Shown: piece after piece, positions 1-64,000 of the stretch | How the letters are laid out: each line of letters opens with the position of its first letter | How positions within the stretch are numbered: position 1 is the first letter of the stretch | NCBI GenBank assembly: GCA_002269645.1 | Contig: NIVC01002100.1 | Coordinates: 1-64,000, forward strand | Direction of reading: 5' to 3' | Origin: Macrostomum lignano | Lineage: Eukaryota | DNA: 64,000 nucleotides | Position numbers and translations under genes: made by a program | The notes under the pieces: model-generated | The model's database searches: none | Told to the model about the DNA's origin: nothing | Seen by the model: only the letters and a program-made list of their open reading frames with translations

Positions 1-2972
1 ATGGTTGAAGGTGTTGTCCTAAGCAACAACCTATATGGACTCAAGAGGGAAGTGCACAGCGATCAATGGCCACCACCTGAAGAAATACCACAAATAGGTG
101 ATTTCAATAATTTCTAATATTTTAAGAGTAATTTTAGGCTCTTATAGAATAATATTAAAGTTCAAGTTCAAATTGGCGTCATCTAAAGTACTTGGTATGA
201 ACTAGAGACTAAAAAAGGTTTCTAACTTGACTAACTAAAAACTTTGTGATTTAGAGCAATATAAACTTAATGGAAGATCTAGAAAATAGGACTTAAATGA
301 TTGATAATTTGATAATTTGATAATTCAATTATCAATTAATTGCAAACAATTGATTGCAAGTTTGATAATTCAACATATGCTCAAAATTTATTTGCGTATC
401 TTTAAATGTGCAGGATTTATCTCAAGGACAGGCTAAATTAGTTATTTGCAGTTAATTTACTTTTCATATCAAGTCTTATAAAGTGCATTAATTAATTTTA
501 TGTATGACGAGTACAATTCATTCAGTTCTGAATTGTTGTCTTTTTGTTGAAAAGTACTTTGCAGTAATGATTTATTGTCTACTTGCAATGTTGTTGGAAT
601 ATTTTAGGATGAATAAAATAAGGCATAAGATACTCATAGTTTCTGCTCAGTGAGTGAGAGAATTCAAGATAACCAAATGAGTTTAGATAATTGAAAAGTA
701 TTTGGCCAAATACATTTGTTGTCTTTTTTCATTCAGCCTTCGCCAAATTTGTCCATGTTGAATTTCTGTCGCCGAATTTGCATGCATCCATTAACTATTA
801 TGATTATTTCAATAAAATATATGCAAAAATAGTTCCAATGATTATAATTTAACAGGTTCAACATCCAAAATGTGCAGGTTTCAATAGCTTGTTATCTTAT
901 AATGATGGTATTGCTTTAAAAATTTGAAACTATATTAAATTGATACTTTCTTTCTTTTACTAAAGGCTACCCACTAGTTTTATAATCAAATACATTTGAT
1001 ACATTTTGATACATTTGATTAAAACATTTGATGTGATACCCTAAATTATGTCAGAAGTACAACCACAATGTACAATTTTTATTAGAAAAAGATAGTGGCT
1101 ATCCTAAAGTGAATTCTATAAATATAAAATTAAAAATAATATGTAGGCCTATGTTCATATAAAGTTTTGTCTATATCAAAAAATCTATAAAATCTACAAT
1201 ATAAAAGCTGTTGCCAGATCATCTGTTTCTAATTTGACTGCCACTGGATCATCTGTCACTAAATTGTCAAGTCACCAGATTGACTAGAAGCCAATCTTTA
1301 TTAGGCCTATATAATGACATTGTATATAATATATAATCACCTAATATAGTATCCAAGGCAAAAAAAGAAATGAATTGTAGACATAAGACATAGACATGGC
1401 AATGAGAAGTAGTAGGTAGGCCCTAGGTATGAGTTATGAAAAAATTTAATATTAATATAAATTTATAATTATATAGGCCTATTATTTTTTGGTAGTAGGC
1501 CTAGGAGTCTAGGACAAAATGATAAAGCTTTAATCAATTTTCTTTAAGTTCAAGACAACTATTATGAAATGGTTTAAATTATGCCTAAAAATACCAAGTA
1601 GGCCTATATTTAGTATAAGCTTAGTTAAGCCAACCAAAGTTTTATTGAAAAAATATATACATAACACATTGTACCCGTACAATTGATTGCTCAGTTCAAC
1701 TAGTTCAATTTTCAGTGCTTTTTAATTTTTCGTACCAATCTGGGTCTTAGACTCAGAATTAGTTAGTTCTGGTGTTGACTGGGTTTTCAACATCTGGACT
1801 GGACTGGTTTGACTGGATTTGACTGAATGGTGTCAGTGTGTCGTGTCGTGTCACGTGCGTCAAGAAATTGACATCCATTTTTATACTAATTCAAAATAAA
1901 GTAAGTTTCTCTGAATTTTGACGTTTAATTGCAGTTATTAAAACACTGGATTTACATGTAAAATTTAACAAACATCTCAAGACAGTATTAGCAAATACAG
2001 TTGATTAAGTGTCTTTTTACGATAAGCATCGATGCGTAAGCAGAGTATACTTTATTAATTAATATACTCAACTTCTAAGCGTAGCAAGGTCCAAAGAAAT
2101 CTTTTTAAATATTGCTTTGTATAGCTTTTCTAGACGGTTTTTCTCCACTCATTTTATCTACGGCGCTTGTACTTGTACGTCAAATTTATTGTAAAATTCT
2201 ATAATGCTTCAATATTTACAAAAACTAAGCAAAATCTGAACTATTATTGATCACTTTCACAAGGACTTCTAGACTAGACTAAGGGGTCGTACTATAAAGC
2301 TATAAAGCGTAAGTTGTATCGTACGTCGGAACTTTTACACTGCGGAGATAGGGGCTAAGAACGATCTTATCTTACGATGGCTTTATAGAATGGGGCCTAA
2401 GTCTGGAAGTCCTTGCACTTTCATTTGGCGAACACAACAGCTAGTATAATTTGCATTTTGCCGGGGACTTCAAGTGTAGATTAGTCACTCATTGTCAGCC
2501 AATCATGTATGTCAGCGTTACCTAGCTAACTTTAATTGGCCCTGTTTTGGAGTGGGGTGGTGGGGCAGAGGATTGGCAGTGGGTGCAGCAGGGTTGGTAT
2601 AGCTGTGGGTGGCTCTTTATACCCGAGTTTTTTGTTTGCAGGCTTGTACTTCGCTCTCTCGTTCATCTAATTTTTTTTGCCTTTGTCTCTATCTACACTG
2701 TACCGGAATAATTCTTTTTTAATCAGATCTAACGTTATTCCTAGATAAATTCATAATGCATGCAAGTTGATATCTTTATTATCTTTCCATACATGTATAT
2801 ATTCTTTAGAAATATTTCATTACAGCTGCTTATAAACGTTACAAAACGCTTCTTCTGTCTTCAAAATACTTTTTGCATCAATTGATGTATTGGGGGGGGA
2901 ATAGCTAATGTAAAATTTACACACAGCAGGGAATGATGCTGAGAGGGACTGTATTCAAAGATACATGTAACA

Positions 2973-3491
2973 ATGAGGGCTCTTTGCGTCTGCCTGTTGG
3001 TGTCTCTGGCCCTGTCCGTGAACTAAATTAACTCCGCCGTGACGCCTCGCAGTGCGGCAGACAACAGGCAAGAGGTTCGGATCTGATCTACAGCGTTGCA
3101 AATGGCGATTATTTGTTCGTCAGCAAGGACAAGAGGGGCAGCGCGCCGGACAATTTGGTCAAGAGAACATCGTTGAGAACATCGGCGAGTCGAGCAAATC
3201 GGTTCCTCCTGCAGCACGGCGGCAATAACCGCTACGGCATCTACAACCCGAGCTCCGATGGCTCACGTGGTCCTGCCTCACCCAAGAGAAGCCATCAAGC
3301 AGAGGAACGAGTTCGTATTTGAGAGCGTCGGGCACAATCGCTCTGTGATATTCAACCCCAGCTATGGTAAATATCTGTTTGCGTCAAAAAGCCTTCACAA
3401 CGTAGACAATAACCTTGTGCTCAGTCATAAATCTTGGTTCGATTGCCGCAACAGGTTCACTCTGATTCTGCACGACGAGCCTTGTTCCTAG
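2973..3491 (+). pseudogene. Disrupted secreted protein with three ~45-aa repeats (beta-trefoil/lectin-like fold inferred)
   Basis: ATG 2973 gives signal peptide MRALCVCLLVSLALSVN, then TAA at 3024-3026. Downstream frames encode IYSVANGDYLFVSK..DNLV..ANRF / IYNPSS..(gap)..HVVL..RNEF / IFNPSYGKYLFASK..NNLVL..RNRF, with a frameshift near 3255. Confidence 0.6.
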
Positions 3492-4750
3492 TCTGTATAA
3501 ATTGAGAGAACTTCATTAAGTGCACCTGAGCTCTCGCACCTGATCAGAGACCGAACGATGCATCTGATAACTTTCAGATTGGGTTAAATCCAGGACTAAT
3601 TAATGACTTAATTGTTTAACAATTTTTTGATACCTACATGTAAGCAAGTTAAGATGACTACTTTGATGCAGTGTAATGTAGATTGATCTGATACGTTGTC
3701 TACGGTATAGAGCTTCTCGATGAATTTAGGCTCAATTAGTTCGCTTTTATACCGAGTTGTTGCAAACAGAACGAAGATTTGCATGGATTACACGTCTGTA
3801 TTGGCTCCTGCTGCTTTTCCAGAATATACATGTAGGGAACAGCTTTTTGTCTATGGGGAGTCTGGAGAGCAGCAGAAATGCTTGAGTTCGATGTCTGATT
3901 CAAATAGAACCAAATGTTGGTCTTAACCTACCTGTTTCTGATTCAGGAAAAAAGAACACAGCTACTATATACGTTATAATTAGGCAGTTTCCGTTTTTTA
4001 TTCACAAAAATCAACAAAATCTTACCTTTAGAACTCTTGTGGATCGCAACTGGCTTTACTATGACCAGGTGGCAATGCTGACAAATGTTTAATTTGTTTC
4101 CTGAAACTTCGTTTGGCTTGTACAAGCTGGCCCTTGGCGGGTTTGGCCCATAGATTTTTGGGCACTGGAAGCAATATATAGATATGTCTATGCTTCCTAG
4201 GCCGAAACGCGGCACAAATACCTTATGGTAACATATGTAATTTGTCAATGCAACAACAGCATCAGCAACAACAATAACAACAACAACATCACAATATACT
4301 GTCAGGTCTTATAAAATACGCGTCTCTGGACTGGGTCGTCTAGATCTTTAGTCTTGTAGTCCTCCGTAAATACAGAAGACAACGACAGGCAACACGAGCC
4401 GTTTGGGCGGACAGATAAGAGGGCTCTGGGTGTGCAGGACGGGCGGTGTGCAGAAGAAGAATTGCATTCAATTAAAGATTAATTGAAATCTTGAACCTAG
4501 AATTTACATGCGCATCTACGAGATACATTAATTTCGTAGTTTTTGTTTACTACTACTTTCTAGTCATGCAGTAGGCGGGATCGCTTAAAACGGTAAAATG
4601 AATGCTGGTTAAATACCACAATACAATTAAACTGCTCAGTCAGCCAGCACGCGGAGGCGAAATAATATAGACACTACTTAGTCATCGTATGATTATTCAC
4701 GGTTATCAACCCATCCCATCCAAAAACCTGATTTGATCTGTCTATCTATC

Positions 4751-4920
4751 CTAGCTTCAGCAAAAAAATTATGCTATTTACGTTTCTTGCTTTGAGAACT
4801 ATTGTTCTTTTTAGTAAATATACCATCGAATCCTTCTAGCTTCAGCGATAAAAATATTTTATGCAATTTACGTTTCTTGCTGTGAGAACTATTGTTCTTT
4901 TTAGTAAATATACCATCGAA
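4751..4920. repeat. ~85-bp direct tandem duplication
   Basis: ctagcttcagc...ataccatcgaat starts at 4751 and again at 4836. Confidence 0.85.
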
Positions 4921-5271
4921 TTGTACAATTTTGCAGACTATTAGCAGAGCCTTTCAAACGGATGCTTGAAAAAAAATAGTCGACGATATAGAATCAGAAT
5001 CAACGATACACTATTTGTGGGATAATGTACAAATTAAATCCAGAATGAATTTCTTCGATAAAACTTGGTCTTTGCCTAAAACTAGCAAAAATAAAGTTGC
5101 AAGCCACTGAACGCGCAAAGGAGTTGCTAGAATTGTAGCAGTCGATTACGAAGCTATTAGTATTTATTTTGGTACCAAATTAATTGACAATTAAAACCAT
5201 AAAACTGAAATGGATGATGCATCGTTCAGCCTCTGATCAGGTGAGAGCCGCCCGGGTCAGTCAGCGAGCGC

Positions 5272-5481
5272 TCAGGTGCAGCGGTACATGCGGGGATTGT
5301 AGCAGTGCGTGCCGCACTTGCGATGACCGACCGGGCACAGGAAGTAGCCATTGATGCAAGTGTGCGTCCTCGGGCTGTAGCAGGTGCCGCCGCAGGACCG
5401 GTCGCCGCCACCGCAGGCGTCAGTAGAGTTCACAGACACGGCCAGCAGAACCAGCAGGCAGACGCAGAGAGCCTTCATCAT
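5272..5481 (-). CDS. 69-aa secreted Cys-rich peptide, CBM52 (Carb_bind)-like
   Basis: Hydrophobic signal MMKALCVCLLVLLAVSVNS; mature part has 8 Cys with two CGxxCYxPxxxxC half-repeats joined by GYFLCP; intronless; TATA box upstream and AATAAA downstream (plus-strand tttatt 5163-5168). Confidence 0.8.
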   Translation of the reverse strand: MMKALCVCLLVLLAVSVNSTDACGGGDRSCGGTCYSPRTHTCINGYFLCPVGHRKCGTHCYNPRMYRCT

Positions 5482-5621
5482 CTTGAGTAGAGGTGTTGAT
5501 GCGGTGAGTAGTGGAATGCTGCAGAACCGATGCGGACTTTTATTCTGTAGGGCCTCTGGTCGGTGCTTGCTGAGTTGCTAAGTGGCTGCTGGCTTGCACC
5601 GTCGCCTCAGTCCGCCGCTTG

Positions 5622-5629
5622 TATTTATA
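5622..5629 (-). promoter_or_regulatory. TATA box of the secreted peptide gene
   Basis: TATAAATA on the minus strand ~140 nt upstream of ATG 5481. Confidence 0.5.
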
Positions 5630-6055
5630 GACTGCGGCCAGAGGCTTGGGGTTGAAGGGTGGAGTGGGGTGGGGGCCATCAGAACACGAAAAACCCCCTC
5701 TGTGAAACCCGCCAGCCAATCAAATTTTGTTTTAAAGACAAGAGCAGACTGTGGTGAGGGGGCGGGGTGCTGGGTCAGCTAGTAATTGATCCAAGCCCCT
5801 GGTGTGTGTGCACATCTACAAATACTATAGTAAAAGCTTATCTTGGTTGGTTAGTACAGCCCTGGCTTAAGCGTTGACGATCGCGTTTTCATTCTCTGCT
5901 AAGTAAATATTGATAGTTTGCAAACGTAAACAAGCTCGTCATTCTTGCATTCAGCTCAATATAATTATAGCTGATACTCGTATTACGCAATAGTCACCCC
6001 AAGTTAGGCTTCGCAAATTCAGAATGCTCTATATGATAATAAATAAATGCAGCTA

Positions 6056-6322
6056 CACTCAGCAACATCGAAAAGTCGCCATCACAGAAGATTCCTTTTT
6101 GAGAGGGCGGCAGGTAAAGTCTCTCAATCTTTGCGAGTGACGCAACTCAGCTACGCCGCGGCAGACTTGAGTTGAGGAATGAAGTGGGGGGGGGAGCGGT
6201 GTGCGAGGGTTGGACGGATCAAAGCTACCCCGATCAGTTTTCTCGTCTATTTTATTTCATAATAGTCCAAGAGAAATTGCTCACTGGCGCATAGAGTGGC
6301 GACTTTTCAACGTTGCTGAGTA
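6056..6322. mobile_element. MITE, ~26-bp TIRs, TA flanks (Tc1/mariner-like); copy 1
   Basis: 5' cactcagcaacatcgaaaagtcgcca versus 3' tggcgacttttcaacgttgctgagta; TA on both sides; a second copy lies at 44602-44878 in inverted orientation. Confidence 0.85.
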
Positions 6323-6499
6323 TACATGTATATTTAAACCCAACGACAGGACAAGATTGTTGCCAATTTCAAAGATCAAAGTCCAGCGCAGATGGTATAT
6401 GCAGCTGATGCTCAGCTCGTTCTTCATCAAAACATTTCTCATCGGATTCACTGGATTCTTCGTTACTTATTTTATAAGATGAATATAGTGGAACGAAGG

Positions 6500-6785
6500 G
6501 ATCGGGGTGATGGGATGAAGGGGATCAGAGTCAGTGGATGAAGGAATCAGAGTCCGTGGATGAAGGAATCAGGGTCCGTGGATGAAGGGATCGGGGTGAT
6601 AGGATGAAGGGGATTAGAGTCAGTGGATGAAGGAATCAGGGTCCGTGGATGAAGGGATCAGGGTCCGTGGATGAAGGGATCAGGGTCCGTGGATGAAGGG
6701 ATCAGGGTCCGTGGATGAAGGGATCAGGGTCCGTGGATGAAGGGATCAGGGTCCGTGGATGAAGGGATCAAGGTCAGCGGGTGAG
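6500..6785. repeat. 22-bp minisatellite (gtggatgaagggatcagggtcc)n
   Basis: Tandem units directly visible. Confidence 0.9.
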
Positions 6786-7795
6786 GGGCACGTTAGCGCC
6801 TCTCTGAAGCACATTTAAGCGCCAACTGAAGGTCATCACAGCATAATTAGAAAGGGCCCGTCGTGCGCTTTCTAAGAAAGTTTGAAATCTGACATTACAA
6901 CCGTAATTTTTCTTTTTGAGTTTGGAATCAAAATTTTCACTTTCCAAGAAAGGCGCTGAGAAATCGATAAAACAATTTGGAGCGGACAGCGAGTGCGCGT
7001 CTGTCCGCGCCGGAAGGGTGCCTGCATCAACAGCGGCAGCACCGATGACGCAACAGGTCGCTTGGACGTACCAGCTGCCGGCGCGGCGCAGCGTCCAATT
7101 CTGGGTGTCGATGAGCCAGATGGCGTCTTCTTTTTTCAGAGCTGCAAACTTTCAGAAAATTGAAACGAGTCCACTGCGCCACTCCATTGCTAATCAACGA
7201 AATTGCTTTTTTTTACTTTTCGTAATTAAGAAAGCGAATTGAGGCCAACTACGCCGTGCTGTGCAGCGGAGAGGAGCTGAAGGGCGAATCAAATTAGCTC
7301 ATAATTAAAACATGCCCGAACTGCCATCGGCCAGCCGGTAGGCCCAATCGCTAATTGATGCAGTCCTAAAATGGCGGATTAAGCAAAAAAGGTCCTGAGA
7401 ATTCGGAGATCCATTTTGCATAATTGAAACTCGCTCGAGCTGTCACTCTGGCTGATCGCCCCGAGACTTGGTCGACCTTTCGCTGCCGACAGACTCCATT
7501 GCTCATCTGCTCAGCCTGCAGTGTGCTCAGGTGGCGCCGGCTGCAAGCAAAGCCGATGCGATGGCGACATGGGCTGTAAATGCAGCTGGGGAGCAGCTTA
7601 TCGTAATTCGCAGGTAGAGCTCTGAAAAATTGCATGTCACCGGCTCTGCTCGAAATCGGGGGCAGCTGAACGGCTCGCTTTGTGGCCGGCAATTCAAAAG
7701 GCGCTGATGGGCTTTGACGGGCGAGCTGAGAGTCCGCTGTGCTCAGTTCTGGAGCGATGCGGCGTTTGCTCAGGGGTAGCAGGTGGGATTCCAGA

Positions 7796-10700
7796 ATGAT
7801 GCTGTGTTGTTTGAGCTGTAGAGATGATGCTGTGAGCTGTAGAGATGATGCTGTGTTGTTTGAGCAGTAGAGATGATGCTGTGTTGTTTGAGCTGTAGAG
7901 ATGATGCTGTGAGCTGTAGAGATGATGCTGTGTTGTTTGAGCAGTAGAGATGATGCTGTGTTGTTTGAGCAGTAGAGATGATGCTGTGAGCTGTAGAGAT
8001 GATGCTGTGAGCTGTAGAGATGATGCTGTGAGCTGTAGAGATGATGCTGTGTTGTTTGAGCAGTAGAGATGATGCTGTTTGAGGTGTAGAGATGATGCTG
8101 TGTTGTTTGAGCTGTAGAGATGATGCTGTTTAAGCTGTAGAGATGATGTTGTGTGAGCTGTAGAGATGATGCTGTGAGCTGTAGAGATGATGCTGTGTTG
8201 TTTGAGCAGTAGAGATGATGCTGTTTGAGGTGTAGAGATGATGCTGTGTTGTTTGAGCTGTAGAGATGATGCTGTTTAAGCTGTAGAGATGATGTTGTGT
8301 GAGCTGTAGAGATGATGCTGTGAGCTGTAGAGATGATGCTGTGTTGTTTGAGCAGTAGAGATGATGCTGTGTTGTTTGAGCAGTAGAGATGATGCTGTTT
8401 GAGCTGTAGAGATGATGCTGTGAGCTGTAGAGATGATGCTGTGAGCTGTAGAGATGATGCTGTGTTGTTTGAGCAGTAGAGATGGTGCTGTGTTGTTTGA
8501 GCAGTAGAGATGATGCTGTTTGAGCTGTAGAGATGATGCTGTGTTGTTTGAGCTGTAGAGATGATGCTGTTTGAGCTGTAGAGATGATGTTGTGTGAGCT
8601 GTAGAGATGATGCTGTGTTGTTTGAGCAGTAGAGATGGTGCTGTGTTGTTTGAGCAGTAGAGATGATGCTGTTTGAGCTGTAGAGATGATGCTGTTTGAG
8701 CTGTAGAGATGATGCTGTGTTGTTTGAGCAGTAGAGATGATGCTGTGTTGTTTGAGCAGTAGAGATGATGCTGTTTGAGCTGTAGAGATGATGCTGTGAG
8801 CTGTAGAGATGATGCTGTGAGCTGTAAAGATGATGCTGTGTTGTTTGAGCTGTAGAGATGATGCTGTTTGAGCTGTAGAGATGATGCTGTGTTGTTTGAG
8901 CTGTAGAGATGATGCTGTGTTGTTTGAGCTGTAGAGATGATGCTGTTTGAGCTGTAGAGATGATGTTGTAAGCTGTAGAGATGATGCTGTGTTGTTTGAG
9001 CAGTAGAGATGATGCTGTGTGAGCTGTAGAGATGATGCTGTGAGCTGTAGAGATGATGCTGTGAGCTATAGAGATGATGCTGTGAGCTGTAGAGATGATG
9101 CTGTTTAAGCTGTAGAGATGACGCTGTGAGCTGTATAGATGATGCAGTGAGAGCAGTAGAGATGATGCTGTGTTGTTTGAGCTGTAGAGATGATGCTGTT
9201 TGAGCTGTAGAGATGATGTTGTGAGCTGTAGAGATGATGCTGTGTTGTTTGAGTAGTAGAGATGATGCTGTTTGAGCTGTAGAGATGATGCTGTGAGCTA
9301 TAGAGATTATGCTGTGTTGTTTGAGCTGTAGAGATGATGCTGTTTGAGCTGTAGAGATGATGTTGTGAGCTGTAGAGATGATGCTGTGTTGTTTGAGCAG
9401 TAGAGATGATGCTGTGTGAGCTGTAGAGATGACGCTGTGAGCTGTAGAGATGATGCTGTGAGCAGTAGAGATGATGCTGTGAGCTGTAGAGATGATGCTG
9501 TTTAAGCTGTAGAGATGACGCTGTGAGCTGTATAGATGATGCAGTGAGAGCAGTAGAGATGATGCTGTGTTGTTTGAGCTGTAGAGATGATGCTGTTTGA
9601 GCTGTAGAGATGATGTTGTGAGCTGTAGAGATGATGCTGTGTTGTTTGAGCAGTAGAGATGATGCTGTGTGAGCTGTAGAGATGATGCTGTGAGCTGTAG
9701 AGATGACGCTGTGAGCTGTAGAAATGATGCTGTGAGCTGTAGAGATGATGCTGTGAGCTGTAGAGATGATGCTGTTTAAGCTGTAGAGATGACGCTGTGA
9801 GCTGTAGAGATGACGCTGTGAGCTGTAGAGATGATGCTGTGAGCTGTAGAGATGACGCTGTGTTGTTTGAGCTGTAGAGATGATGCTGTTTGAGCTGTAG
9901 AGATAATGTTGTGAGCTGTAGAGATGATGCTGTGTTGTTTGAGCAGTAGAGATGATGCTGTGTGAGCTGTAGAGATGATGCTGTGAGCTGTAGAGATGAC
10001 GCTGTGAGCTGTAGAAATGATGCTGTGAGCTGTAGAGATGATGCTGTGAGCTGTAGAGATGATGCTGTTTAAGCTGTAGAGATGACGCTGTGAGCTGTAG
10101 AGATGACGCTGTGAGCTGTATAGATGATGCTGTGTTGTTTGAGCTGTAGAGATGATGCTGTGTTGTTTGAGCTGTAGAGATGATGCTGTTTGAGCTGTAG
10201 AGATGATGTTGTAAGCTGTAGAGATGATGCTGTGTTGTTTGAGCAGTAGAGATGATGCTGTGTGAGCTGTAGAGATGATGCTGTGAGCTGTAGAGATGAT
10301 GCTGTGAGCTATAGAGATGATGCTGTGAGCTGTAGAGATGATGCTGTTTAAGCTGTAGAGATGACGCTGTGAGCTGTATAGATGATGCAGTGAGAGCAGT
10401 AGAGATGATGCTGTGTTGTTTGAGCTGTAGAGATGATGCTGTTTGAGCTGTAGAGATGATGTTGTGAGCTGTAGAGATGATGCTGTGTTGTTTGAGTAGT
10501 AGAGATGATGCTGTTTGAGCTGTAGAGATGATGCTGTGAGCTATAGAGATGATGCTGTGTTGTTTGAGCTGTAGAGATGATGCTGTTTGAGCTGTAGAGA
10601 TGATGTTGTGAGCTGTAGAGATGATGCTGTGTTGTTTGAGCAGTAGAGATGATGCTGTGTGAGCTGTAGAGATGACGCTGTGAGCTGTAGAGATGATGCT

Positions 10701-12759
10701 GTGAGCTGTAGAGATGATGCTGTGAGCTGTAGAGATGATGCTGTTTAAGCTGTAGAGATGACGCTGTGAGCTGTATAGATGATGCAGTGAGAGCAGTAGA
10801 GATGATGCTGTGTTGTTTGAGCTGTAGAGATGATGCTGTTTGAGCTGTAGAGATGATGTTGTGAGCTGTAGAGATGATGCTGTGTTGTTTGAGCAGTAGA
10901 GATGATGCTGTGTGAGCTGTAGAGATGATGCTGTGAGCTGTAGAGATGACGCTGTGAGCTGTAGAAATGATGCTGTGAGCTGTAGAGATGATGCTGTGAG
11001 CTGTAGAGATGATGCTGTTTAAGCTGTAGAGATGACGCTGTGAGCTGTAGAGATGACGCTGTGAGCTGTAGAGATGATGCTGTGAGCTGTAGAGATGACG
11101 CTGTGTTGTTTGAGCTGTAGAGATGATGCTGTTTGAGCTGTAGAGATAATGTTGTGAGCTGTAGAGATGATGCTGTGTTGTTTGAGCAGTAGAGATGATG
11201 CTGTGTGAGCTGTAGAGATGATGCTGTGAGCTGTAGAGATGACGCTGTGAGCTGTAGAAATGATGCTGTGAGCTGTAGAGATGATGCTGTGAGCTGTAGA
11301 GATGATGCTGTTTAAGCTGTAGAGATGACGCTGTGAGCTGTAGAGATGACGCTGTGAGCTGTATAGATGATGCTGTGTTGTTTGAGCTGTAGAGATGCTG
11401 TTTGAGCTGTAGAGATGATATTGTGAGCTGTAGAGATGATGCTGTGTTGTTTGAGCAGTAGAGATGATGCTGTTTGAGCTGTAAAGATGATGCTGTGAGC
11501 TATAGAGATGATGCTGTGTTGTTTGAGCTGTAGAGATGATGCTCTTTGAGCTGTAGAGATGATGTTGTGAGCTGTAGAGATGATGCTGTGTTGTTTAAGC
11601 AGTAGAGATGATGCTGTGTGAGCTGTAGAGATGATGCTGTGAGCTGTAGAGATGATGCTGTGTTGTTTGAGCAGTAGAGATGATGCTGTGTTGTTTGAGC
11701 AGTAGAGATGATGCTGTTTGAGCTGTAGAGATGATGCTGTTTGAGCTGTAGAGACGATGCTGTGTTGTTTGAGCTGTAGAGATAATGCTGTTTGAGCTGT
11801 AGAAATGATGTTGTGTGAGCTGTAGAGATGATGCTGTGAGCTGTAGAGATGATGCTGCGTTGTTTGAGCTGTAGAGATGATGCTGTGTGAGCTGTAGAGA
11901 TGATGTTGTGAGCTGTAGAGATGATGCTGTGAGCTGTAGAGATGATGCTGTGAGCTGTAAAGATGATGCTGTGTTGTTTGAGCTGTAGAGATGATGCTGT
12001 TTGAGCTGTAGAGATGATGCTGTGTTGTTTGAGCTGTAGAGATGATGCTGTTTGAGCTGTAGAGATGATGTTGTGTGAGCTGTAGAGATGATGCTGTGAG
12101 CTGTAGAGATGATGCTGTGTTGTTTGAGCAGTAGAGATGATGCTGTTTGAGCTGTAGAGATGATGCTGTTTGAGCTGTAGAGATGATGCTGTGTTGTTTG
12201 AGCAGTAGAGATGATGCTGTGTTGTTTGAGCAGTAGAGATGATGCTGTGTGAGCTGTAGAGATGATGCTGTGAGCTGTAGAGATGATGCTGTGAGCTGTA
12301 AAGATGATGCTGTGTTGTTTGAGCAGTAGAGATGATGCTGTTTGAGCTGTAGAGATGATGTTGTGAGCTGTAGAGATGATGCTGTGCTGTTTGAGCAGTA
12401 GAGATGATGCTGTGTGAGCTGTAGAGATGATGCTGTGAGCTGTAGAGATGACGCTGTGAGCTGTATAGATGATGCAGTGAGAGCTGTAGAGATAATGATG
12501 TGAGCTGTAGAGATGATGCTGTGAGCTGTAGAGATGATGCTGTGAGCTGTAGAGATGATGCTGTGTTGTTTGAGCAGTAGAGATGAGGCTGTGAGAGCTG
12601 TAGAGATGATGCTGTGAGCTGTAGAGATGATGCTGTGAGAGCTGTAGAGATGATGCTGCGTGAGCTGTAGAGATGATGCTGTGTGAGCTGTAGATGATGC
12701 TGTGAGCTGTAGAGATGATGCTGTGAGCTGTAGAGATGATGCTGTTAGAGCTGTAGAGA
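7796..12759. repeat. ~5-kb satellite of 21/23/28-bp variants (gagctgtagagatgatgctgt[gttgttt])
   Basis: Period 21 at 7991/8012/8033 with +2 and +7 length variants; higher-order structure present. Confidence 0.97.
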
Positions 12760-13393
12760 CTTCTCCAATCGCACACATTTCGGAGATAGAGTGAGATGCA
12801 GATTGGAGTTGGTCTGAAGTAAATTTTGCACCTACAAATGCTGAGCAGCAGCTGACAAGGCTCGATGCCAGCCTCTGCATGGCAAACCCCATTCTGCATG
12901 GGTTTAAGCACCGCTTAAAGAATGCAAGAAGTCGTGGCGGCGCGAGTTGCTTGCTGACACAGAAGGAACAAGAACGAGCAGTTTTTTATTAACTGAAGCG
13001 ATAGACTCGGCCGCAGGGGACCGAGGAAGGAAAAGTGCGTCATCGGTCGAACACAGAGTGAAATAAATTAAGGTCTGCGAATGTGGGTAATTCTGCTTCA
13101 AAATAAGCACAGATCTGCAGTAGCAACAAGAAGAGATCGGACACAAAAAGCACAAAACAACGAATCTTCTGCTGCGTCACTCTGAAGATTGGAACAACAG
13201 TCGGACAAAAGCGAAGCTCAGAGGAATTCCAGCTTCAGCCGCTCCTGACTCAGCTGGTCTATCAGGTGGTAAGCGGCGATTTTGGGCGATTTTAAAGTTT
13301 GCAGTCTTTGGGTAACATCAAGTTTACGACAGCTGGTACTGATTTAGTTGAGTGACGAATGTCTGTTGCCATAGCAATTAGCCCAGAGGCCTG

Positions 13394-15163
13394 TCAGACC
13401 CCGGCATCCTGGACGACGCGGGCTCCGTCGCGATGCTCGCCGCCAAGCCGCTGGTCCCCGTCCTCCTCCGCGTCTCCGGCCTTCCCGCCAGCTCCGCGCC
13501 GCGCGCGACAAAAGCCGAACAGCCGGCGCTGCAGCCGGACGTGCAGGTTGGGGTTGGCCAGGATGTAGATGAAGAAGTTCATAGCCGAGTCCAGGATAGT
13601 CATGATGTTCGCCAGCTTCATCAGGCAGGCGCTGGCCGGAGCGCTGGGATCCAGGATGACGAAGGCGGCGTCCAGCTTGGACAGGAAGGTGGGGAACTCG
13701 AACAGGAAGAACACAATGGACAGCGCCACCACCGTGCGGTTGGCCGGCGAGATGGAGAAGCGGCGACGACGCTGGCGACGAAGGCCAGACGCGATGCTCT
13801 CGGAGTCGGCTGACACGGAGGCTGCGCCGGAGGCGGCGGCAGCGGCGGCGGCGGCGGCGGAGACCTGCAGCTGGCGCTGGCGCCTCCTGTCGGCGCGGAT
13901 GACGGCCCAGGAGATGACGGCGGAGGAGGCGGAGACGATGATGATGGGGCCGCCGGACTGCAGCAGGAACAGCAGCACGGTCAGGTAGGCCACCGAGTAG
14001 GCGGGGCTGAGCAGCAGCGGCGAGGGCAGCTGGTCCGCGAACTGGCCCGAGTCCAGGCAGAACACGTAGACGAACTCGAAGGCCCGCGGCAGCCCCAGGA
14101 AGAAGGCGAGGCCGGTGGCCAGGGGGAACACCGGGCAGTTGAGCCGGCGGCTCCAGGTGTGGTACAGGCGGTGCGGCGATGCCACGGCGGCCAGGCGCAG
14201 CAGGGCGATGAACACCACCGTCCAGTTGCGGAGGCACTGCGACCAGGCGACCAGCGGCACGCTGAGGCTCATCAGCACGGCCAGGAAGCGCGCCAAGCCG
14301 GATGAGGGCACCTGCGGCGGTGCGTGGCTTAGTGACATGTACTTTACGTTGCGCATGCTCTAGGCATTAGAAAGTGTTCACATCGAACTTTTGCTCTTTA
14401 ATCGCACCCGAAGCTACGCAACGATAAGCGGATTTTGCATGATAGGCTTCAACAGTACATGTACCGATATATGTTGCATAGTGCAGTTTTGCAGCTCTAG
14501 GTAGATAATTCTAAGTAAGGTGGCTTATTGAATGGACCAATGCTCTACATGCAGTCTAAGTCAGTACTCTCTGGTTCTCAGCCAATGTCCTGTATGAGGA
14601 AAATCCACCTCTCCTCCAAGGCTGAGCTGCAATTTCGCATTTTATTCATTTTCCCTAAGGCCCGGCCTCCCATATCATGGATGAAAACTGCTGATACGTG
14701 TCTGGAACCATGCGTTTGGAGTGACTTTTCAATTTCACAGAAGACAACCCCAAGCTAAGCATAATAATTTAGTAATTCTTCACACCTGAAGCCGCTGCGT
14801 GAGCAGCAGCAGGTAGAGGAAGAAGTGCAGGAACAGCGCCAGGTTGAAGGCGATCTCCACGGCGGCCAGGCGGAGCAGCAGCCGGAGGTTTCGGCGCAGT
14901 CCGCGTCCGCGGCCCCCGTTGCCGACGGCGCCCCCGCCGACCCTGGCGCGCAGCTGTCGATGGCACAGGGCGAGGCCCCAGGCGTTGACCAGCACGTTGA
15001 CGACGGCCAGGCCGGGGGTGGAGAAGTTGTACAGCCGCTCCAGGTTGTGCAGAGGCTGGCGCTGGCTCAGGTTGGAGCAGGAGACGCCGCGGGACCACAG
15101 GTCCTCTGCGTCCGAGGAGTTGTCGACCAGCAGCAGCCACTGGCCCAGCGATAGGTCTGACAT
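13394..15163 (-). CDS. Rhodopsin-family (class A) GPCR, peptide-receptor-like; 2 exons (14786-15163, 13394-14311), ~431 aa
   Basis: Seven hydrophobic segments; TM1 VVNVLVN, TM6 VFFLFEFP, TM7 LDSAMNFFIY; phase-0 intron 14312-14785 with CAG|GTGTGA donor and CCGCAG acceptor joins both ORFs in frame. Confidence 0.85.
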
Positions 15164-35900: not shown

Positions 35901-38900
35901 CTCTACCCTCCATCTCTACTCTCCATCTCTACCCTCCATCTCTACCCTCCATCTCTACCCTCCATCTCTACCCTCCATCTCTACTCTCCGTCTAAACCCT
36001 CAATCTTTAAACCTCTGTCTTAAACGATCAATCTTTAAACCTCTGTCTTAAACCCTCCATCTTTAAACCTCAGCTGTCTTAAACCCTCCATCTTTAAACC
36101 TCAGCTGTCTTAAACCCTCAATCTTTAAACCTCTGTCTTAAACCCTCCATCTTTAAACCTCAGCTGTCTTAAACCCTCAATCTTTAAACCTCTGTCTTAA
36201 ACCCTCCATCTTTAAACCTCAGCTGTCTTAAACCCTCCATCTTTAAACCTCAGCTGTCTTAAACCCTCAATCTTTAAACCTCTGTCTTAAACCCTCCATC
36301 TTTAAACCTCAGCTGTCTTAAACCCTCAATCTTTAAACCTCTGTCTTAAACCCTCCGTCTTTAAACCTCTGTCTTAAACCCTCCGTCTTTAAACCTCTGT
36401 CTTAAACCCTCAATCTTTAAACCTCTGTCTTAAACCCTCAATCTTTAAACCTCTGTCTTAAACCCTCCGTCTTTAAACCTCTGTCTTAAACCCTCCGTCT
36501 TTAAACCTCTGTCTTAAACCCTCAATCTTTAAACCTCTGTCTTAAACCCTCCGTCTTTAAACCTCTGTCTTAAACCCTCCGTCTTTAAACCTCTGTCTTA
36601 AACCCTCCGTCTTTAAACCTCTGTCTTAAACCCTCCATCTTTAAACCTCTGTCTTAAACCCTCCGTCTCTACTCTGCGTTTCTAAATATCTGTCTCTAAA
36701 CTCCTGTCTCTATCGTCCGCTTCAACTCTCCCCATCAATCAGTCAGCAGCCACAAACCGCTCGCCAGCTGCTTAGCGATGGCGGACACGGGCGCCGGCGC
36801 CAGGCCCTGCACATGCAGCGCCGCCGTGGCCGCCGACGAGTCGACGTGCATCGACAGCCAGGCGCCGGACTCGAAGCCGCGGAACGGGTTGGCGCGCGAC
36901 CGGTGCAGCCGCAGGCAGAGCAGCACGCGCCGGTCCCCGGAATGCAGCGGCTCTGCAGCTCCGGCAACGCCGCTGGCGGGCAGCGCAACGCCCTCGATGC
37001 AGTGCTTCGCCGAGGCCACCAGCCCGGCGGAGGCGGCGGCGTGGGCGGCGTCCAGCTGCAGCAGCAGCGTCCGCTCAGCCCGGGCCCCACCAACGAAGGC
37101 CCTGAGGAAGTCGGAGAACTGGCCCTCGGTCTCGAAGCTGCTGAGGTTGACGCTGATGAGGCCGCCCAGTTCCGGGCAGTCGGCGGCCAGCTGCTGCGAC
37201 TCGGCCTCCGACATCAGCTGATCGAATGACGTCACCTGCAGCAGGCGGTGGCGCGGCCAGGCCCGGAGCGCGGAGCGAAGGCGCTGAGCCAGGCGCTGAC
37301 CGGGACGGAAGGCGGCGCTCTCAGGGTCGATGGCGGTTTCCTAGAATTAAGAGAGAAGCGAAATTTCTCAAGCCGTGAATTGCGGAATCAAGGAGAAAGC
37401 CACCGTGCAAATTGATGATGAGGCGGGTGAAGATGAGATGGAGTGAAGAGGAGGTGGGGTGAAGAGGAGGTGGGGTGAAGAGGAGGTGGGGTGAAGATGA
37501 TGTGGGGTGAAGATGATGTGGAGTGAAGATGATGTGGAGTGAAGGGTGACGATGAGGTGTGGTGAAGATGATGTGGGGTGAAGGGTGACGATGAGGTTTG
37601 GTGAAGATGAGGAGGGGTGAAGATGAGGTGGAGTGAAGGGTGACGATGAGGTGTGGTGAAGATGAGGAGGGGTGAAGATGATGTGGGGTGAAGGGTGACG
37701 ATGAGGTGTGGTGAAGATGAGGTAGGGTGAAGATGAGATGTGGTGTAGGATAAGATGAGGTGGGGTGAAGATGAGTTGGCGTGAAGATGAGGTGTGGTGA
37801 AGATGAGGTAGGGTGAAGATGAGGTGTGGTGAAGGGTAAAATGAGGTGGGGTGAAGATGAGGTGCGGTGAAGATGATGTGGGGTGAAGATGAGGTGCGGT
37901 GAAGATGATGTGAGGTGAAGATGAGGTGAGGTGAAGATGAGGTGGTTTGAGAACCCGAGCAGTTGCAGCTCAGCTCACCAGCAGAGGCGAGTCCTGGGCC
38001 AGCCTGAAGTAGCAGTCGGGGCTGGCGGTCAGCATCAGCCGCTGAACGACTCGCAGCCGCAGTTTCGCCTCGTCAATGACGGTCTCACAGATGCCGCTTG
38101 CGTCAGCTGACTGCTGAGGCCACAGCTCAAGCAGCAGGGCGGCCACGCTGTCGTCATGGTAACCGATGAGAACATCAGACAGGGTTGCTTGGCCCTGAAG
38201 CAGCTCAGCCTTCAGATAGCTGACAATGGCCTCGCAGAGTTGTTTCTGCTTTGAATTGAGCAGGGAGTCCAGGCACAGGCGGTGCTTCTCCATGCGGTTG
38301 ATGAGCGGGATGGGGAACCGGTCCATTACGGTGTCGCGGTCCGCCACCACCACGATGCGGAAGTTCTCGTGGATTTTGCACTTCAGCCTGGCGGGGCACA
38401 ATGAGGAACAGTTATATTTGCACGATTTACCCTTCGAGCATCGATTCAGGTGGGGTCCCAGCTCAGCAGTTGAAGCTACAGACTCAGAAACGCCGCAAGT
38501 GCAAACATTTTGATAGCTGAGCTCACCTGTGAGTCCCCAGTCCCAGGTCGACGTAGCGCTGCCCGCCGCAGGTCTCATAGTACTGGTTGAGCACATCGTA
38601 CAGAGACTCGTACAGCGAATCCATATTCATGAGCACAACGGTCTCGCCTCGCTCCATGGCCAGCTTGATCTTGTTGATGTCGCGGCACACCTTGGTGTAC
38701 AGCTGGTCGTGCGGGAAGCTGCTGCCGAAGATGACGGTGGACTGGCGGCCGCCGGGCCGGCGCAGCAGCGCCTTGAAGCCGGCCAGGTTCTGCGTGACCA
38801 GCAACAGGTAGCGCTCCTCGGGGTCGCGCGTCTCCAGCGCCGCGTCCAGCACGAGCTTCGCCAGGCCTCTGTGCGCGTCGTCAGGCTGGCCGCCATTCAG

Positions 38901-41900
38901 ACGGAGGAACTCCTTCACCGGGTCCACCTCCTCCAGGCCCCCGAAGTTCTTGGTAGCGCAGCGCAGGGTGACGGCGGCCCCGTCGGCGGCGTCTGGGGCA
39001 GTCGCAGAGCGGCGCGAGTCCTTCACCAGGCTAAAGAAGTCGCGCAGGCCGAAGAACTCGCGGCCAACTCGATCAATAGCGGTCTTGTGGATCTGGGGAA
39101 CAACAGGGGTGGGCGAGATTGACTGGACTGACTGACTGACTGATTGACTGGACTGGAGCAAACATTAGGATGGCATCATCTGTCAGGGGAGCACACATCA
39201 GGATGGGATCAAAGCTCGCCAAGCCGCTCTCTTCACCCTGATGAGCAACCAGCCTGCTCACCCCGAGGTAGAACTCGGCCAGGCGATCCCAGTCCTCCGA
39301 CTTTCCGTCTCTGCAGATGCCCCTGGCTGTGGCCACCAGCTCGTTGCGATCCGGCACGTCCCGCTGCACGTAGAGGCCGCGGTTCATCTTGGCCGGGTCC
39401 AGCGCCCAGTTGGAAATGCCGACGAACGCCACCTTGCGGCACTCGGGCGGCAGCGACTCCTCGCTGTCCTCGTCGGCTGGCCCCGCCTCCTCGATGCAGC
39501 CGTCCTCCAGCAGCGGGTGTAGACTCTTCAACGGCATGTCCGGGCTGTCCTCAGCGAGGCCGACCTCCTCCAGCACCACGACGGCGACAAACTCGTCCTG
39601 CGGTTTGCCTCTCTGCAGCATGGCGCACTGCTGGAAGGTCTGGATGATGCCGTCCGAGGTGGACCAGGGCGAGCACTGGAAGGCCAGCATGTGGGTGTTC
39701 GGCAGCTCCTTGTAGGCGTCGGAGGCGGAGTTGCGGCCCAGCATGCGGCTGCGCACGATGGTCTTGGCAAGGGACTTGGAGCTGCCCGGCTTGCCCACCA
39801 GGAACAGCGGCAGGCGCAGGCTGATGCACACCACCATCATGAACACGTTCTCGCGCAGGGCGCCGTTCTTGGAGATGCCTGGCGGCAGGGGCACCTCGTT
39901 GCTGATAAACACCTCTTGGCACCGTTTCAGCAGCTCTTCAATTTGCAACGGGCTAAGGTTGTCAAAGCAGGTGTGGCGCCGCAGTAGCTTTGCCAGTAGC
40001 TTTATATAATCCTCCTTGAAGGCAGCGCTGAGGCGGCTCAGGTAGCAGACGGACATGGCAACAATGAGCGCGCAGGTAATCTTATTGACGGTAGGCTCTC
40101 TGTGAGCTGCATGGAGTCTGCGGTAGCCGAACGCCCAGTTCATCACCCGCAGCGCCTTGTCGACTTCCCGCAGCGACACGAAGCGGCTCTCGTCGCTGAA
40201 GCCGCGCATGAATCGCTGCGACTCGCAGACGGCGTCGGCCACGGCGTCAGCGTGCGGCCGCGCCTCAGCGGGCAGGCCGGACTTGAGCATCCGCAGGGCG
40301 TACTGGCTCTCGGCCTCGCTGGACAGGCTGCCAAAGTCCCACAGCAGGCTGACCAGGCTGAGCGGCATTGGCCGCACCCGGTAAACCAGGTGGCGCATCG
40401 GCAGGTCGCCGAAGCGGTCGGCAGTTTCCTCCTTGCGCACCCGGTAGCCAAGCCCGCTGCTCTCCAGCCGGTCGATCATCTCGTCCGTGTGCCGCCTGTA
40501 GGGGTTGCAGGCCGCCACGAAGCGCAGGCAGCCGTCGGGGTCCACCGGGTGGCCGTGCAGGCGGCGGTCGCACATGACCTCCTTGATCAGGCCGACAGCA
40601 TTGGTGCTGTTTACCTCGTCGAAGAACAGAATCGTGAACAGGCCCGGCACCAAGCGGCTGTTCTTGCGGGCGAGCCTCTCCGCCCGACGGACGGCGTCTT
40701 CGATGGCCCGCTCTGTGGTGCCTCCGTGCACCTTCAGCACCAGCATGTTGTCCACGCCTTCAGCGCTCTGCGGCAGCATCAGCCGGGCCAGGAAGCGGAC
40801 CAGGCGAGTCTTGCCGCAGCCGGTCTCGCCCATGACAACCACCGGCAGGTTGCAGCGGAAGCGCATGTACACCGCCAGCATCTTGCGCGCGTTGTCCGCT
40901 GTCAGCTCGTAGGATGGGTCGGGATCGGCCGTGTTTTCGGAGCCGAGGATGCGGCGCAGACAGTCGAGCTTGTCCGTCCGGCTGCGGTTCTCGAAGTTGT
41001 CGCTGAGAGGCGCGCGGTTTCGCACAAGGGCCTGCACCAGGGCCTGGGTCATGACACCGCGGCGCAGCACCTGCCCGGTGGCCACGCCGATCAGGTTGCC
41101 GGCCGCGTCCACGGAGAAGCCAACAAAGGAGAAGGTGCAGTCGTGGTTAAAGAACAGGTAGGGGTGGTCCTCGTCCTCCCAGTGGCGGCGCAGGGCGAAC
41201 TGCTCGATCCGCTCCGGCCCGGCGTCCTCCTCCTGTGCAGCCCGGCCGGTGCCCGCGCTGGCGCTCTCGTCGGCAATGCGCAGCGACCGGGTGGCGAAGT
41301 CCTTCGCCATGAGCAGCATCGAGTCCACCACGAACTGGCGAAAGCCCGGCAGGTCCTCCTGGGCCGCGGCGCTGCAGAAGTCTGACTCCTCGAAGTCGCG
41401 CAGCTGGCGATCGAGGAAGCGGCAGAAGGTGGCCAGCTCCAGCCAGCTGGGGTCGCGGAGGCCGCAGTTGCCAGTCAGCGTTTCTAGGGCCGCCACAGCT
41501 GTGACGGGAGCAGCGTTCACCTGTCGCAGAAGGTGGCGCGCCGGCCGCTGAATCCAGTCATCGGCGAGGCTCAGCTCGTCCCAGAAGCAGCCATCGGATC
41601 CGGACGCGGCTCCGGCGCGCATGCGGCCGAGGGTTTCCGCCGGCGTGACGCAGCGGACGGTGGGCAGGAAGCGGATGGTCTGCAGCGCGCCGAGCCGCAG
41701 CGGCGAGTGCTCCAGCAGAAAGACGTCGCGGGGTGACCGCCGCCAGACGAAGCCCTTGGAGCTCCGCAGGGCACCGAGAAGCAGCAATTGAGCCAGCGCC
41801 TCGTCCAGGTCTTCGCGAACCTCCCTGGCGATGTCCAGGTGAAACACCCTGCGCGTCACTGCCGCTTCGCTGTCGGTCGCGTCCGCTGAGCACAGAAATT

Positions 41901-63382: not shown

Positions 63383-64000
63383 CTATGAAGCTTCGGGCGA
63401 AATCTCGACCTTCCTGCGCCACCCCACCCTCCAGCAGCGCAAGCGGCAGGCAAACCAGACAGCTCGCAGTGCGGCACCCAAGAAGGGCGCAGGTGGCGCA
63501 CCGAGCTGCTCTTCCACATCGAACTGGTCGGCTGCAACCGAATTTTCATGGGTCTCAGCCTCACCGGCCACATCAGGCGAGCTGCTATCCAGTGACGGCA
63601 GCAGGAGAAGCGTCAGCGAGCCGTCCGCGCAGCCGCACAGCGCGCCGCTGGAGTCGGCCAGGCAGGCGAGCGCCATCAGCTCAGCGGGCAGTCGGAACTC
63701 GGCCAGCAGGGCGCGGTCGGCGAGCCGCACAAGCCGCAGGCTGCCGCGCGCCGCCCGATAGTGCAGCGCGTGTCCACCGTCCGGAGTCAACGCCGAGATG
63801 CCGACGCTGCCGACGCCGTCAGCGGGTGAGCGGCGCAGCAGCCAAGCGGGCGGGTCTCCCGCTGGCTGGCGAAGTTCCAGCAGGCGAAGGCCGCCGGCCG
63901 CAGGTGCCGCCAGTCCGCGATGGCCGTCCAAAGTGGCGATGCCGTCCCAGTCGGGGAAGGAGCGCAGAGCTCGGCCGGTGCGGAAGTCCAGAACCAGCGT
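63383..64000 (-). CDS. C-terminal exon of an NWD1/NWD2-like (NACHT-WD40) beta-propeller protein, partial
   Basis: Frame open from the window edge: LDFRTGRALRSFPDWDG..GLAAPAAGGLRLLEL..ADGV..LHYRAARGSLRLVRLAD..LAEFRLPAEL..CADGSL; GC-rich codons; stop at 63383. Confidence 0.6.
   Translation of the reverse strand, partial: TLVLDFRTGRALRSFPDWDGIATLDGHRGLAAPAAGGLRLLELRQPAGDPPAWLLRRSPADGVGSVGISALTPDGGHALHYRAARGSLRLVRLADRALLAEFRLPAELMALACLADSSGALCGCADGSLTLLLLPSLDSSSPDVAGEAETHENSVAADQFDVEEQLGAPPAPFLGAALRAVWFACRLRCWRVGWRRKVEISPEAS

Follow-up and report, generated by a model that had tools for sequence, protein, structure and literature searches.

The analysed window is a stretch of 64 kb from the genome of the free-living flatworm Macrostomum lignano (assembly GCA_002269645.1), and this analysis concerns two convergent loci within it: a small minus-strand gene for a secreted protein with a CBM52-like (carbohydrate-binding) module, and a plus-strand locus (in the following, the plus locus), which is homologous to this gene at both ends, from the start codon to the 3' untranslated region (3'UTR), and differs from it in the middle alone. 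The stop codons of the two (3489–3491 and 5272–5274) are 1.78 kb apart. The two-gene arrangement is shared by three contigs, L001, L002, and L003, of which L001 and L003 are diverged additional copies of the locus; these contigs are called the three genomic copies below and make, together with the window, four versions of the locus. Between the window and L002 (contig NIVC01004792.1), 14 indels and no mismatches were found over 14.8 kb (window 1–14850), and to judge from this pattern they are one locus from differently polished assemblies. Because they differ by indels only, single-base indels in M. lignano assemblies want read-level support. The occurrence of extra copies fits the genome redundancy reported for the sequenced M. 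lignano strain (PMC5730564). As this is flatworm DNA, prokaryote-style lists of open reading frames (ORFs) served as a guide only. The coordinates of all features are collected in Table 1.

Table 1. Features of the plus locus and of the minus-strand CBM52-like gene (positions refer to the window).
Feature	Position	Strand	Description
16-nt unit AGGGAATGATGCTGAG	2928–2943	+	30 nt upstream of the ATG of the plus locus
Leader copy	2973–3024	+	MRALCVCLLVSLALSVN; 43/52 nt identical to the minus-strand leader
Candidate microintron	3018–3052	+	35 nt, GTGAAC...CGCAG; splicing would omit the stop and continue the leader in frame 3
In-frame TAA stop, codon 18	3024–3026	+	At the leader/insert junction; present in window, L001, L002, and L003
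Linker remnant of trefoil gene	3027–3079	+	AVTPRSAA at 3036–3059 in the leader frame, compared with AVTPGSAA in L004
Beta-trefoil piece A	3053–3262	+	Frame 3; repeat 1 and first strand of repeat 2; aligns to P0003 35–92
Break point	3255–3268	+	Approximately 14 codons gone (GLWLFVSNDREEPH equivalent); frame 3 to frame 1
Beta-trefoil piece B	about 3258/3264–3491	+	Frame 1; rest of repeat 2 and repeat 3; P0003 107–178, 55% identity
Insert trailer	3492–3520	+	29 nt matching neither gene; right end of the replaced segment
Copied 3' end	3521–3564	+	TGC ACC TGA (Cys-Thr-stop) and 3'UTR; non-coding relic
3' block 1	3521–3537 and 5280–5264	+ and -	16/17 nt identical; short-word comparison
3' block 2	3537–3564 and 5243–5216	+ and -	26/28 nt identical; short-word comparison
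AATAAA poly(A) signal of CBM52-like gene	5163–5168	-	Read from the sequence; shared similarity ends just before it (~5171)
CBM52-like gene, 3' end	5216–5280	-	Last two codons, stop, and 3'UTR; includes a 21-nt stretch without plus-strand counterpart
CBM52-like gene, 69-aa secreted protein	5272–5481	-	Single-exon ORF; signal peptide and 50-aa domain with 10 Cys
Leader of CBM52-like gene	5427–5478	-	From the second ATG; MKALCVCLLVLLAVSVN(S)
TATA-like TATAAATA box	5622–5629	-	~145 nt upstream of the CBM52-like ATG; read from the sequence

The minus-strand gene is intact and, according to RNA-seq-based annotation, transcribed. The GenBank annotation of M. lignano derives from RNA-seq-guided transcripts (PMC5730564) and includes gene calls for the exact 69-aa protein on two contigs of assembly GCA_002269645.1. 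In the three genomic copies the gene sequence is identical but for a 1-nt deletion in L003, so that two of the three are intact. On L003 (10001–10255) this deletion, at the equivalent of window position 5327, is accompanied by an annotated frameshifted protein of 84 aa (BOX15_Mlig018268g3; P0002). The designation as CBM52-like, given in the initial annotation, is borne out by a match to the Pfam family PF10645 (Carb_bind; 36.3 bits against a cutoff of 25, E = 6.6e-9), in which residues 29–69 of the protein align to profile positions 1–45 of 49. The likeness to this fungal beta-1,3-glucan-binding module thus extends over 45 of the 49 model positions. In the literature found, however, CBM52 is fungal, and here it forms a stand-alone 69-aa secreted protein of a flatworm; the module is usually attached to glucanases. 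Among 5.8 billion proteins and in the Joint Genome Institute (JGI) metagenomes, the protein had no relatives outside the M. lignano copies. The single-sequence structure model is weak (predicted local distance difference test, pLDDT, 68.6) and consists of three short hairpins, and neither a PDB sequence search nor a fold search with this model gave a match. The module may stem from horizontal transfer or reflect a convergent cysteine pattern.

The 5' end of this gene recurs at the plus locus. The leader match described in the initial annotation was confirmed, and it comprises 14 of 17 aa at the protein level. It begins exactly at the ATG, the 80 nt upstream being at background-level identity. 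When either 52-mer was slid over both window strands (~128,000 positions), the partner gave 43 identical positions and no other site more than 30 (mean 13.0, SD 3.4). Within the window the 18-nt core of the leader is confined to these two sites, against 0.17 expected, and the gapped alignment score of the 5' ends is 83, compared with 18.7 ± 2.7 for shuffled sequences. Both leaders have a normal signal-peptide anatomy; the minus-strand leader has K at position 2–3, an uncharged core of 14 residues, and candidate cleavage sites between AVS and VNS or between VNS and TDA. Four of the seven differing codons are synonymous; of the amino acid changes, R/K and L/V are conservative and the third is S/L. 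The substitutions in the plus leader among the three genomic copies (at 2997 and 3020) are likewise synonymous in the leader frame. On the strength of these comparisons, the resemblance of the leaders is due to common descent and not to chance. Upstream of the ATG the plus locus has no similarity to the CBM52-like gene and no counterpart of the TATA-like box, which presumably is the promoter of that gene; the duplicate therefore appears to have left promoter and 5'UTR behind.

Similarity had been reported to stop right after the leader. This is correct at the 5' end and incorrect overall, because it resumes at the 3' ends in two collinear blocks (Table 1) and in weaker form runs on to ~3634 on the plus and ~5171 on the minus strand. 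The gapped score of the 3' ends is 61, whereas shuffled sequences reach 20.5 ± 3.2 (maximum 37), and the 28-mer of the second block has two copies against 0 expected and is unique to both loci. In the CBM52-like gene, the TGC ACC TGA of the first block encodes the final conserved Cys in the domain that Pfam matches and a Thr, followed by the stop codon and then the 3'UTR. At the plus locus it sits 30 nt past a different stop, the TAG at 3489–3491 that belongs to the insert. Since the 3' end is shared as well, what was re-used appears to be a whole duplicated gene frame with a replaced core and not a leader moving alone, and the stranded Cys-Thr-stop relic indicates the polarity, with the CBM52-like gene as scaffold and the plus-strand middle as newcomer. 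Comparing the two loci gave no sign of a larger inverted duplication, as nothing was detected past the gene ends.

Neither trefoil piece of the plus locus had a significant Pfam or PDB sequence match, and an indexed protein search with piece B yielded no candidates. HMMER comparison of piece B to 1.84 billion representatives, however, retrieved 23 relatives, the best of which (P0003) shares 55% identity (E = 4e-20). The family is built of three repeats of YNPSYxxYLFVSND...GDN(I/V)VE(A/S)H...RNxFxL, and relatives pass the threshold of RicinB_lectin_2 (PF14200; P0016 with 32.6 bits against 25.6). A model of P0003 based on a 17-sequence alignment has a pLDDT of 89.7, and every top match in the PDB is a beta-trefoil (TM-scores up to 0.90). 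At the plus locus the repeat motifs recur over frames 3 and 1 (GDYLFVSKD...NLV and GKYLFASKS...NLV; NRYGIYNPS and NRSVIFNPS; NRFLL, NEFVF, and NRFTL), and the two pieces must therefore once have been one ORF with internal repeats. As far as sequence homology can tell, the plus-strand middle (~3025–3520) is a fragment of a beta-trefoil, ricin-B-lectin-like gene. The two cargoes are thus different folds, as had been proposed: a Cys-rich PF10645 module and a member of a beta-trefoil family.

The contig of P0003, L004, contains a complete ORF that consists of a different signal peptide of its own (MLLSQVACTIALSAALLAFSG), a linker of ~60 aa, and the trefoil. Its DNA is 64% identical to window positions 3035–3471 (alignment over 489 nt), and given this identity L004 may come from a related animal. 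The ORF occupies positions 78–767 of this 1018-nt contig (JGI sample 3300036433), with the ATG at nt 78, which the stored gene call misses by starting 150 nt too far downstream; 3' of the trefoil gene is a minisatellite of the GACTGTCTT type. Intact members of the family exist in other organisms, and the broken copies at the present locus are its sole trace in the annotated M. lignano genome. Elsewhere, Hydra and environmental proteins combine the module with aerolysin/ETX-MTX2 pore-forming domains, and other proteins combine it with RING or EEP phosphatase-like domains (fused or related members are P0007, P0011, P0014, P0026, which is Hydra vulgaris LOC136080052, and P0031), and stand-alone copies occur in actinomycetes. 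With the ricin-B-like trefoil modules of PF14200, including the binding modules of aerolysin/ETX-MTX2 pore-formers, the window copy has the threefold repeat homology in common; in contrast to them it has no pore-forming domain, lacks a core strand, is frameshifted, and has no Pfam match of its own.

The left junction of the fragment coincides with the signal-peptide end, and the leader and the linker of the new cargo share one frame. Because the leader frame here reads a linker like that of L004 (Table 1), the lectin fragment must start within its linker, without a signal peptide of its own, and was joined in frame. A net gain of 5 nt in the linker causes a shift into frame 3 between ~3060 and ~3079, before the trefoil. 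A patch at 3039–3062 also resembles codons 19–26 of the CBM52-like gene, with an anchored extension score of 14 that is reached by 5 of 1000 shuffles. The junction patch scores 29 against the L004 linker (4 of 2000 shuffles) and 25 against the CBM52-like gene (18 of 2000). A continuation of the CBM52 homology for ~40 nt past the leader was considered and downgraded, since the L004 linker gives an in-frame, uninterrupted alignment to this stretch that is no worse. The pattern TGACGCC..GC.G.GCGGC is common to the plus locus, the CBM52-like gene, and L004, the latter being a relative and not the actual donor, and the patch may represent microhomology used in the joining event.

Contrary to the initial annotation, the plus-strand "gene" is not open. 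The leader frame is closed by a stop at codon 18, and what coding potential follows is divided between two segments in other frames. The missing GLWLFVSNDREEPH, equivalent to P0003 93–106, is the whole core beta-strand of repeat 2 in the model and coincides exactly with the frame shift; 7 of 20 conserved positions of the family are lost, and three complete trefoil repeats in one reading frame were not found at the plus locus, repeat 2 being broken. The layout of stop, frameshifts, and deletion is common to all four versions of the locus. L001 and L003 additionally have a frameshifting 1-nt insertion near 3455, and they retain, like the relative, 12 nt after position 3292 that are absent from the window and L002. 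No copy of the plus locus has a gene call, though the RNA-seq-based annotation calls its 69-aa neighbor. The 16-nt unit AGGGAATGATGCTGAG upstream occurs once in the window and L002, twice in L001, and five times in L003, and with this varying copy number the 5' flank looks unconstrained. A live secreted effector, as which the plus-strand product had been regarded, is therefore not supported, given the stop, two frameshifts, and core-strand deletion in all three genomic copies and the missing annotation. The shared ends of the two loci have diverged by ~7–17%, compared with ~1–5% between the locus copies, and duplication and swap thus appear to predate the recent genome duplication of M. lignano.

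Taken together, the plus locus is probably an inverted partial duplicate of the CBM52-like gene, whose cargo was replaced in frame by a lectin fragment and which is now a pseudogene. According to this model, a segment of the CBM52-like gene that began with the start codon and ended shortly before the poly(A) signal would have been duplicated in inverted orientation ~1.7 kb away, as indicated by the homology of both ends. The mature-domain part of the copy (~146 nt, codon 18 to codon 66) would then have been replaced by ~0.5 kb of a beta-trefoil gene, which, by homology to the intact relative, would begin in the linker behind the trefoil gene's own signal peptide and end 29 nt past the stop codon of that gene. 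As the signal peptide ends at the left junction and the lectin linker continues the leader frame, a new secreted protein would have resulted on paper. The likely route would be break repair or replication template switching, and the shared patch at the junction hints at microhomology. Subsequently the chimera would have been inactivated: the junction now holds a stop and the linker a frameshift, repeat 2 is ~14 codons short and changes frame, and two of the three copies have one frameshift more. The arrangement would be older than the recent genome duplication, since all three locus copies carry it.

Known routes to chimeric genes are exon-shuffling-like fusion, templated insertion at break repair, and template switching by fork stalling and template switching or microhomology-mediated break-induced replication (FoSTeS/MMBIR). 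Chimeras formed by duplication with ectopic insertion or replacement resemble the present case in having flanks from one parent around an unrelated middle, an inverted orientation, and an in-frame junction at a domain boundary; there may be microhomology at the junction here too. They differ in that here the donor was not found in the same genome and the product has decayed. Classical intron-mediated exon shuffling is unlike this case, as the intact parent contains no intron. Two further origins were considered and rejected. A retrocopy is contradicted by the lack of a poly(A) tract and of a spliced-leader remnant and by the poly(A) signal having remained uncopied, and the ends of a dispersed repeat or transposon, with the leader as a non-coding repeat, are incompatible with blocks that are all unique to the two loci and of which one is plainly coding.

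Several observations weigh against the interpretation as a cargo-swapped pseudogene. The patch at 3039–3062 resembles both parents about equally, so the exact left junction is blurred. A profile search for the trefoil family in 5.8 billion proteins recovered 31 members and none from M. lignano, so that no donor gene for the fragment was found in this species. The absence of a gene call is no proof of silence, since non-coding transcripts were filtered from the GenBank annotation (PMC5730564). The trefoil pieces are free of in-frame stops over ~440 nt and the leader substitutions are synonymous, which could point to very recent decay or to continued synthesis of some product, and splicing of a 35-nt GT-AG stretch would take out the stop together with the first frameshift. 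Finally, the leader census covered the window, the paralogous contigs, and annotated proteins, and copies or an intact chimera may exist elsewhere in the genome or transcriptome.

The reading frame across the junction can be read directly from the DNA, whereas a past function of the chimera is inferred and uncertain. It is favored by a junction that keeps the frame at the signal-peptide boundary, by the open trefoil pieces, and by the two synonymous substitutions in the leader; the stop at the junction itself and the promoter that was not copied speak against it. That the locus is the footprint of a signal-peptide capture, in which template switching or break repair gave rise to a temporary secreted lectin on a borrowed leader and 3'UTR, is accordingly a rather doubtful proposition.

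Alternatively, the plus locus might be a live gene, in which splicing of a microintron at 3018–3052 would lead to a secreted protein of ~104 aa in which a short tail follows the leader and trefoil repeat 1, with some new function. M. lignano is known to have microintrons, which are concentrated toward 5' ends (PMC6530080), and the candidate, which emerged from an enumeration of all GT/GC...AG pairs of 19–200 nt at the plus locus, has the GT...AG borders, the length, and the position typical of flatworm microintrons. In L003 its donor is changed from GTG to GTA and is still a donor, and a single excision would overcome the stop and the first frameshift and connect the leader to pieces without in-frame stops. 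However, the spliced ORF still ends at 3320–3322, and a product without two thirds of the trefoil is unlikely to fold. At least one other GT-AG pair has the same effect on the frame, so chance is not small, and the would-be intron contains the leader-frame homology to the coding linker of the relative. Furthermore, the gene call, the parental promoter, constraint on the 5' flank, and an AATAAA after the 3' block are all missing. We therefore consider a live gene improbable and the candidate microintron probably coincidental. A repair of the frame by an intron near 3260 was rejected, because all options that would fix the frame are 19–34 nt long with poor signals and none is credible. As for intron sizes in other genes, a Ribosomal_L10-family gene on L002 has one intron of ~870 nt and the junctions of a large AAA gene in the window (see below) are ambiguous; no minimum intron size follows from either.

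A reversed polarity, with an ancestral gene made of leader, trefoil, and 3'UTR, from which the minus-strand gene was derived by a CBM52-like module replacing the trefoil, has to be weighed as well. Indeed, the shared ends alone give no direction, and the CBM52-like module, having no relative in any animal or outside the M. lignano genome, could itself be the newcomer. This scenario nevertheless seems unlikely in view of the Cys-Thr-stop codons, which are functional in the minus-strand gene and stranded 30 nt behind a different stop at the plus locus. In addition, the trefoil segment resembles an insert by bringing its own stop and a foreign trailer of 29 nt, and in L004, which carries the nearest relative of the trefoil, the signal peptide is a different one.

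The initial annotation had interpreted the shared leader as a reusable secretion cassette that repeatedly fronts new cargoes and so gives birth to secreted effectors. Its underlying observation, that the same signal-peptide-coding sequence precedes two unrelated cargoes, is sound, considering the nucleotide match of the leaders and the distinct cargo families. In line with a cassette, the junction is in frame and coincides with the signal-peptide end, and both leaders keep the full signal-peptide anatomy, with differences that are synonymous or conservative. The cassette itself did not withstand scrutiny: in the window and the three paralogous contigs, the leader was found at the two loci only, and it and both cargoes occur once per locus copy. 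A search for proteins sharing at least three 5-mers with the leader-bearing 69-aa protein among 5.8 billion proteins, including the M. lignano GenBank proteome, returned two candidates, both of them the protein itself, and the leader DNA pattern was absent from JGI metagenomes. The leader also is not a separate exon, the minus-strand gene being one uninterrupted ORF; the shared 3' end indicates one duplicated gene instead of a mobile leader, and the second cargo is a pseudogene. The proposed analogy to toxin and defense-peptide superfamilies with conserved leaders and variable mature regions fails because the mature regions are of different families and folds and thus have no common ancestry. 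In the "secretory cassette" families of cone-snail toxins and frog preprodermaseptins, there are tens to hundreds of paralogs and the mature parts share common ancestry. The conserved signal peptide and the sharp drop in similarity at the leader end are reminiscent of these superfamilies; in contrast to them, there are here two loci, unrelated folds joined by replacement, a shared 3'UTR, and one dead member. A recurrent cassette is thus very unlikely, and re-use of the signal peptide appears to have happened once at this locus. Lastly, chance or convergence of Leu/Val-rich, CTG-biased signal peptides, which are compositionally alike, or an assembly artefact can be practically dismissed in the light of 43 of 52 identities against a maximum of 30 elsewhere, the independent collinear 3' matches, and the presence of the same structure on three contigs and in a differently polished assembly.

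Some further features of the window deserve mention. The spacer between the two genes contains a 90-nt tandem duplication (4751–4921) with a 70-nt core of 93% identity. Positions 7800–12900 are occupied by a tandem array of ~5 kb that aligns to itself in dozens of registers, varies in length among the locus copies, and when translated yields long spurious ORFs (e.g., 11312–12892). The remaining features are on the minus strand. An ORF with weak similarity to rhodopsin-type seven-transmembrane receptors (13394–14356) stays under the Pfam threshold. Exons of a very large gene extend over 36700–44500 and include an unbroken ORF of 1806 aa with an AAA_5 (dynein-related) ATPase domain, with overlapping ends of adjacent ORFs that suggest short introns. 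A 750-aa ORF (52227–54479) with ~20 tandem PPSDAEKNQD repeats has no Pfam match, and an ORF for an NWD2-type beta-propeller is located at 63383–63931 (72.9 bits).

For the biology of the two families, specialists may note that a fungal-type CBM52 module occurs as an orphan secreted protein in a flatworm, and that M. lignano holds the relic of a trefoil family known from actinomycetes and from pore-former-like proteins of Hydra. As a caution, a shared leader should not be taken for a cassette before the opposite gene end has been compared and the reading frame checked for lesions. In more general terms, the locus suggests that a secretion signal can pass to an unrelated protein without introns, by duplication of a gene and in-frame replacement of its core at the signal-peptide boundary. 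As a single decayed event it is of some interest for the origin of secreted proteins and does not constitute a new system. Should M. lignano, however, hold more such cargo-swapped duplicates, some of them intact, new secreted proteins would have arisen there repeatedly by a route that needs no introns.

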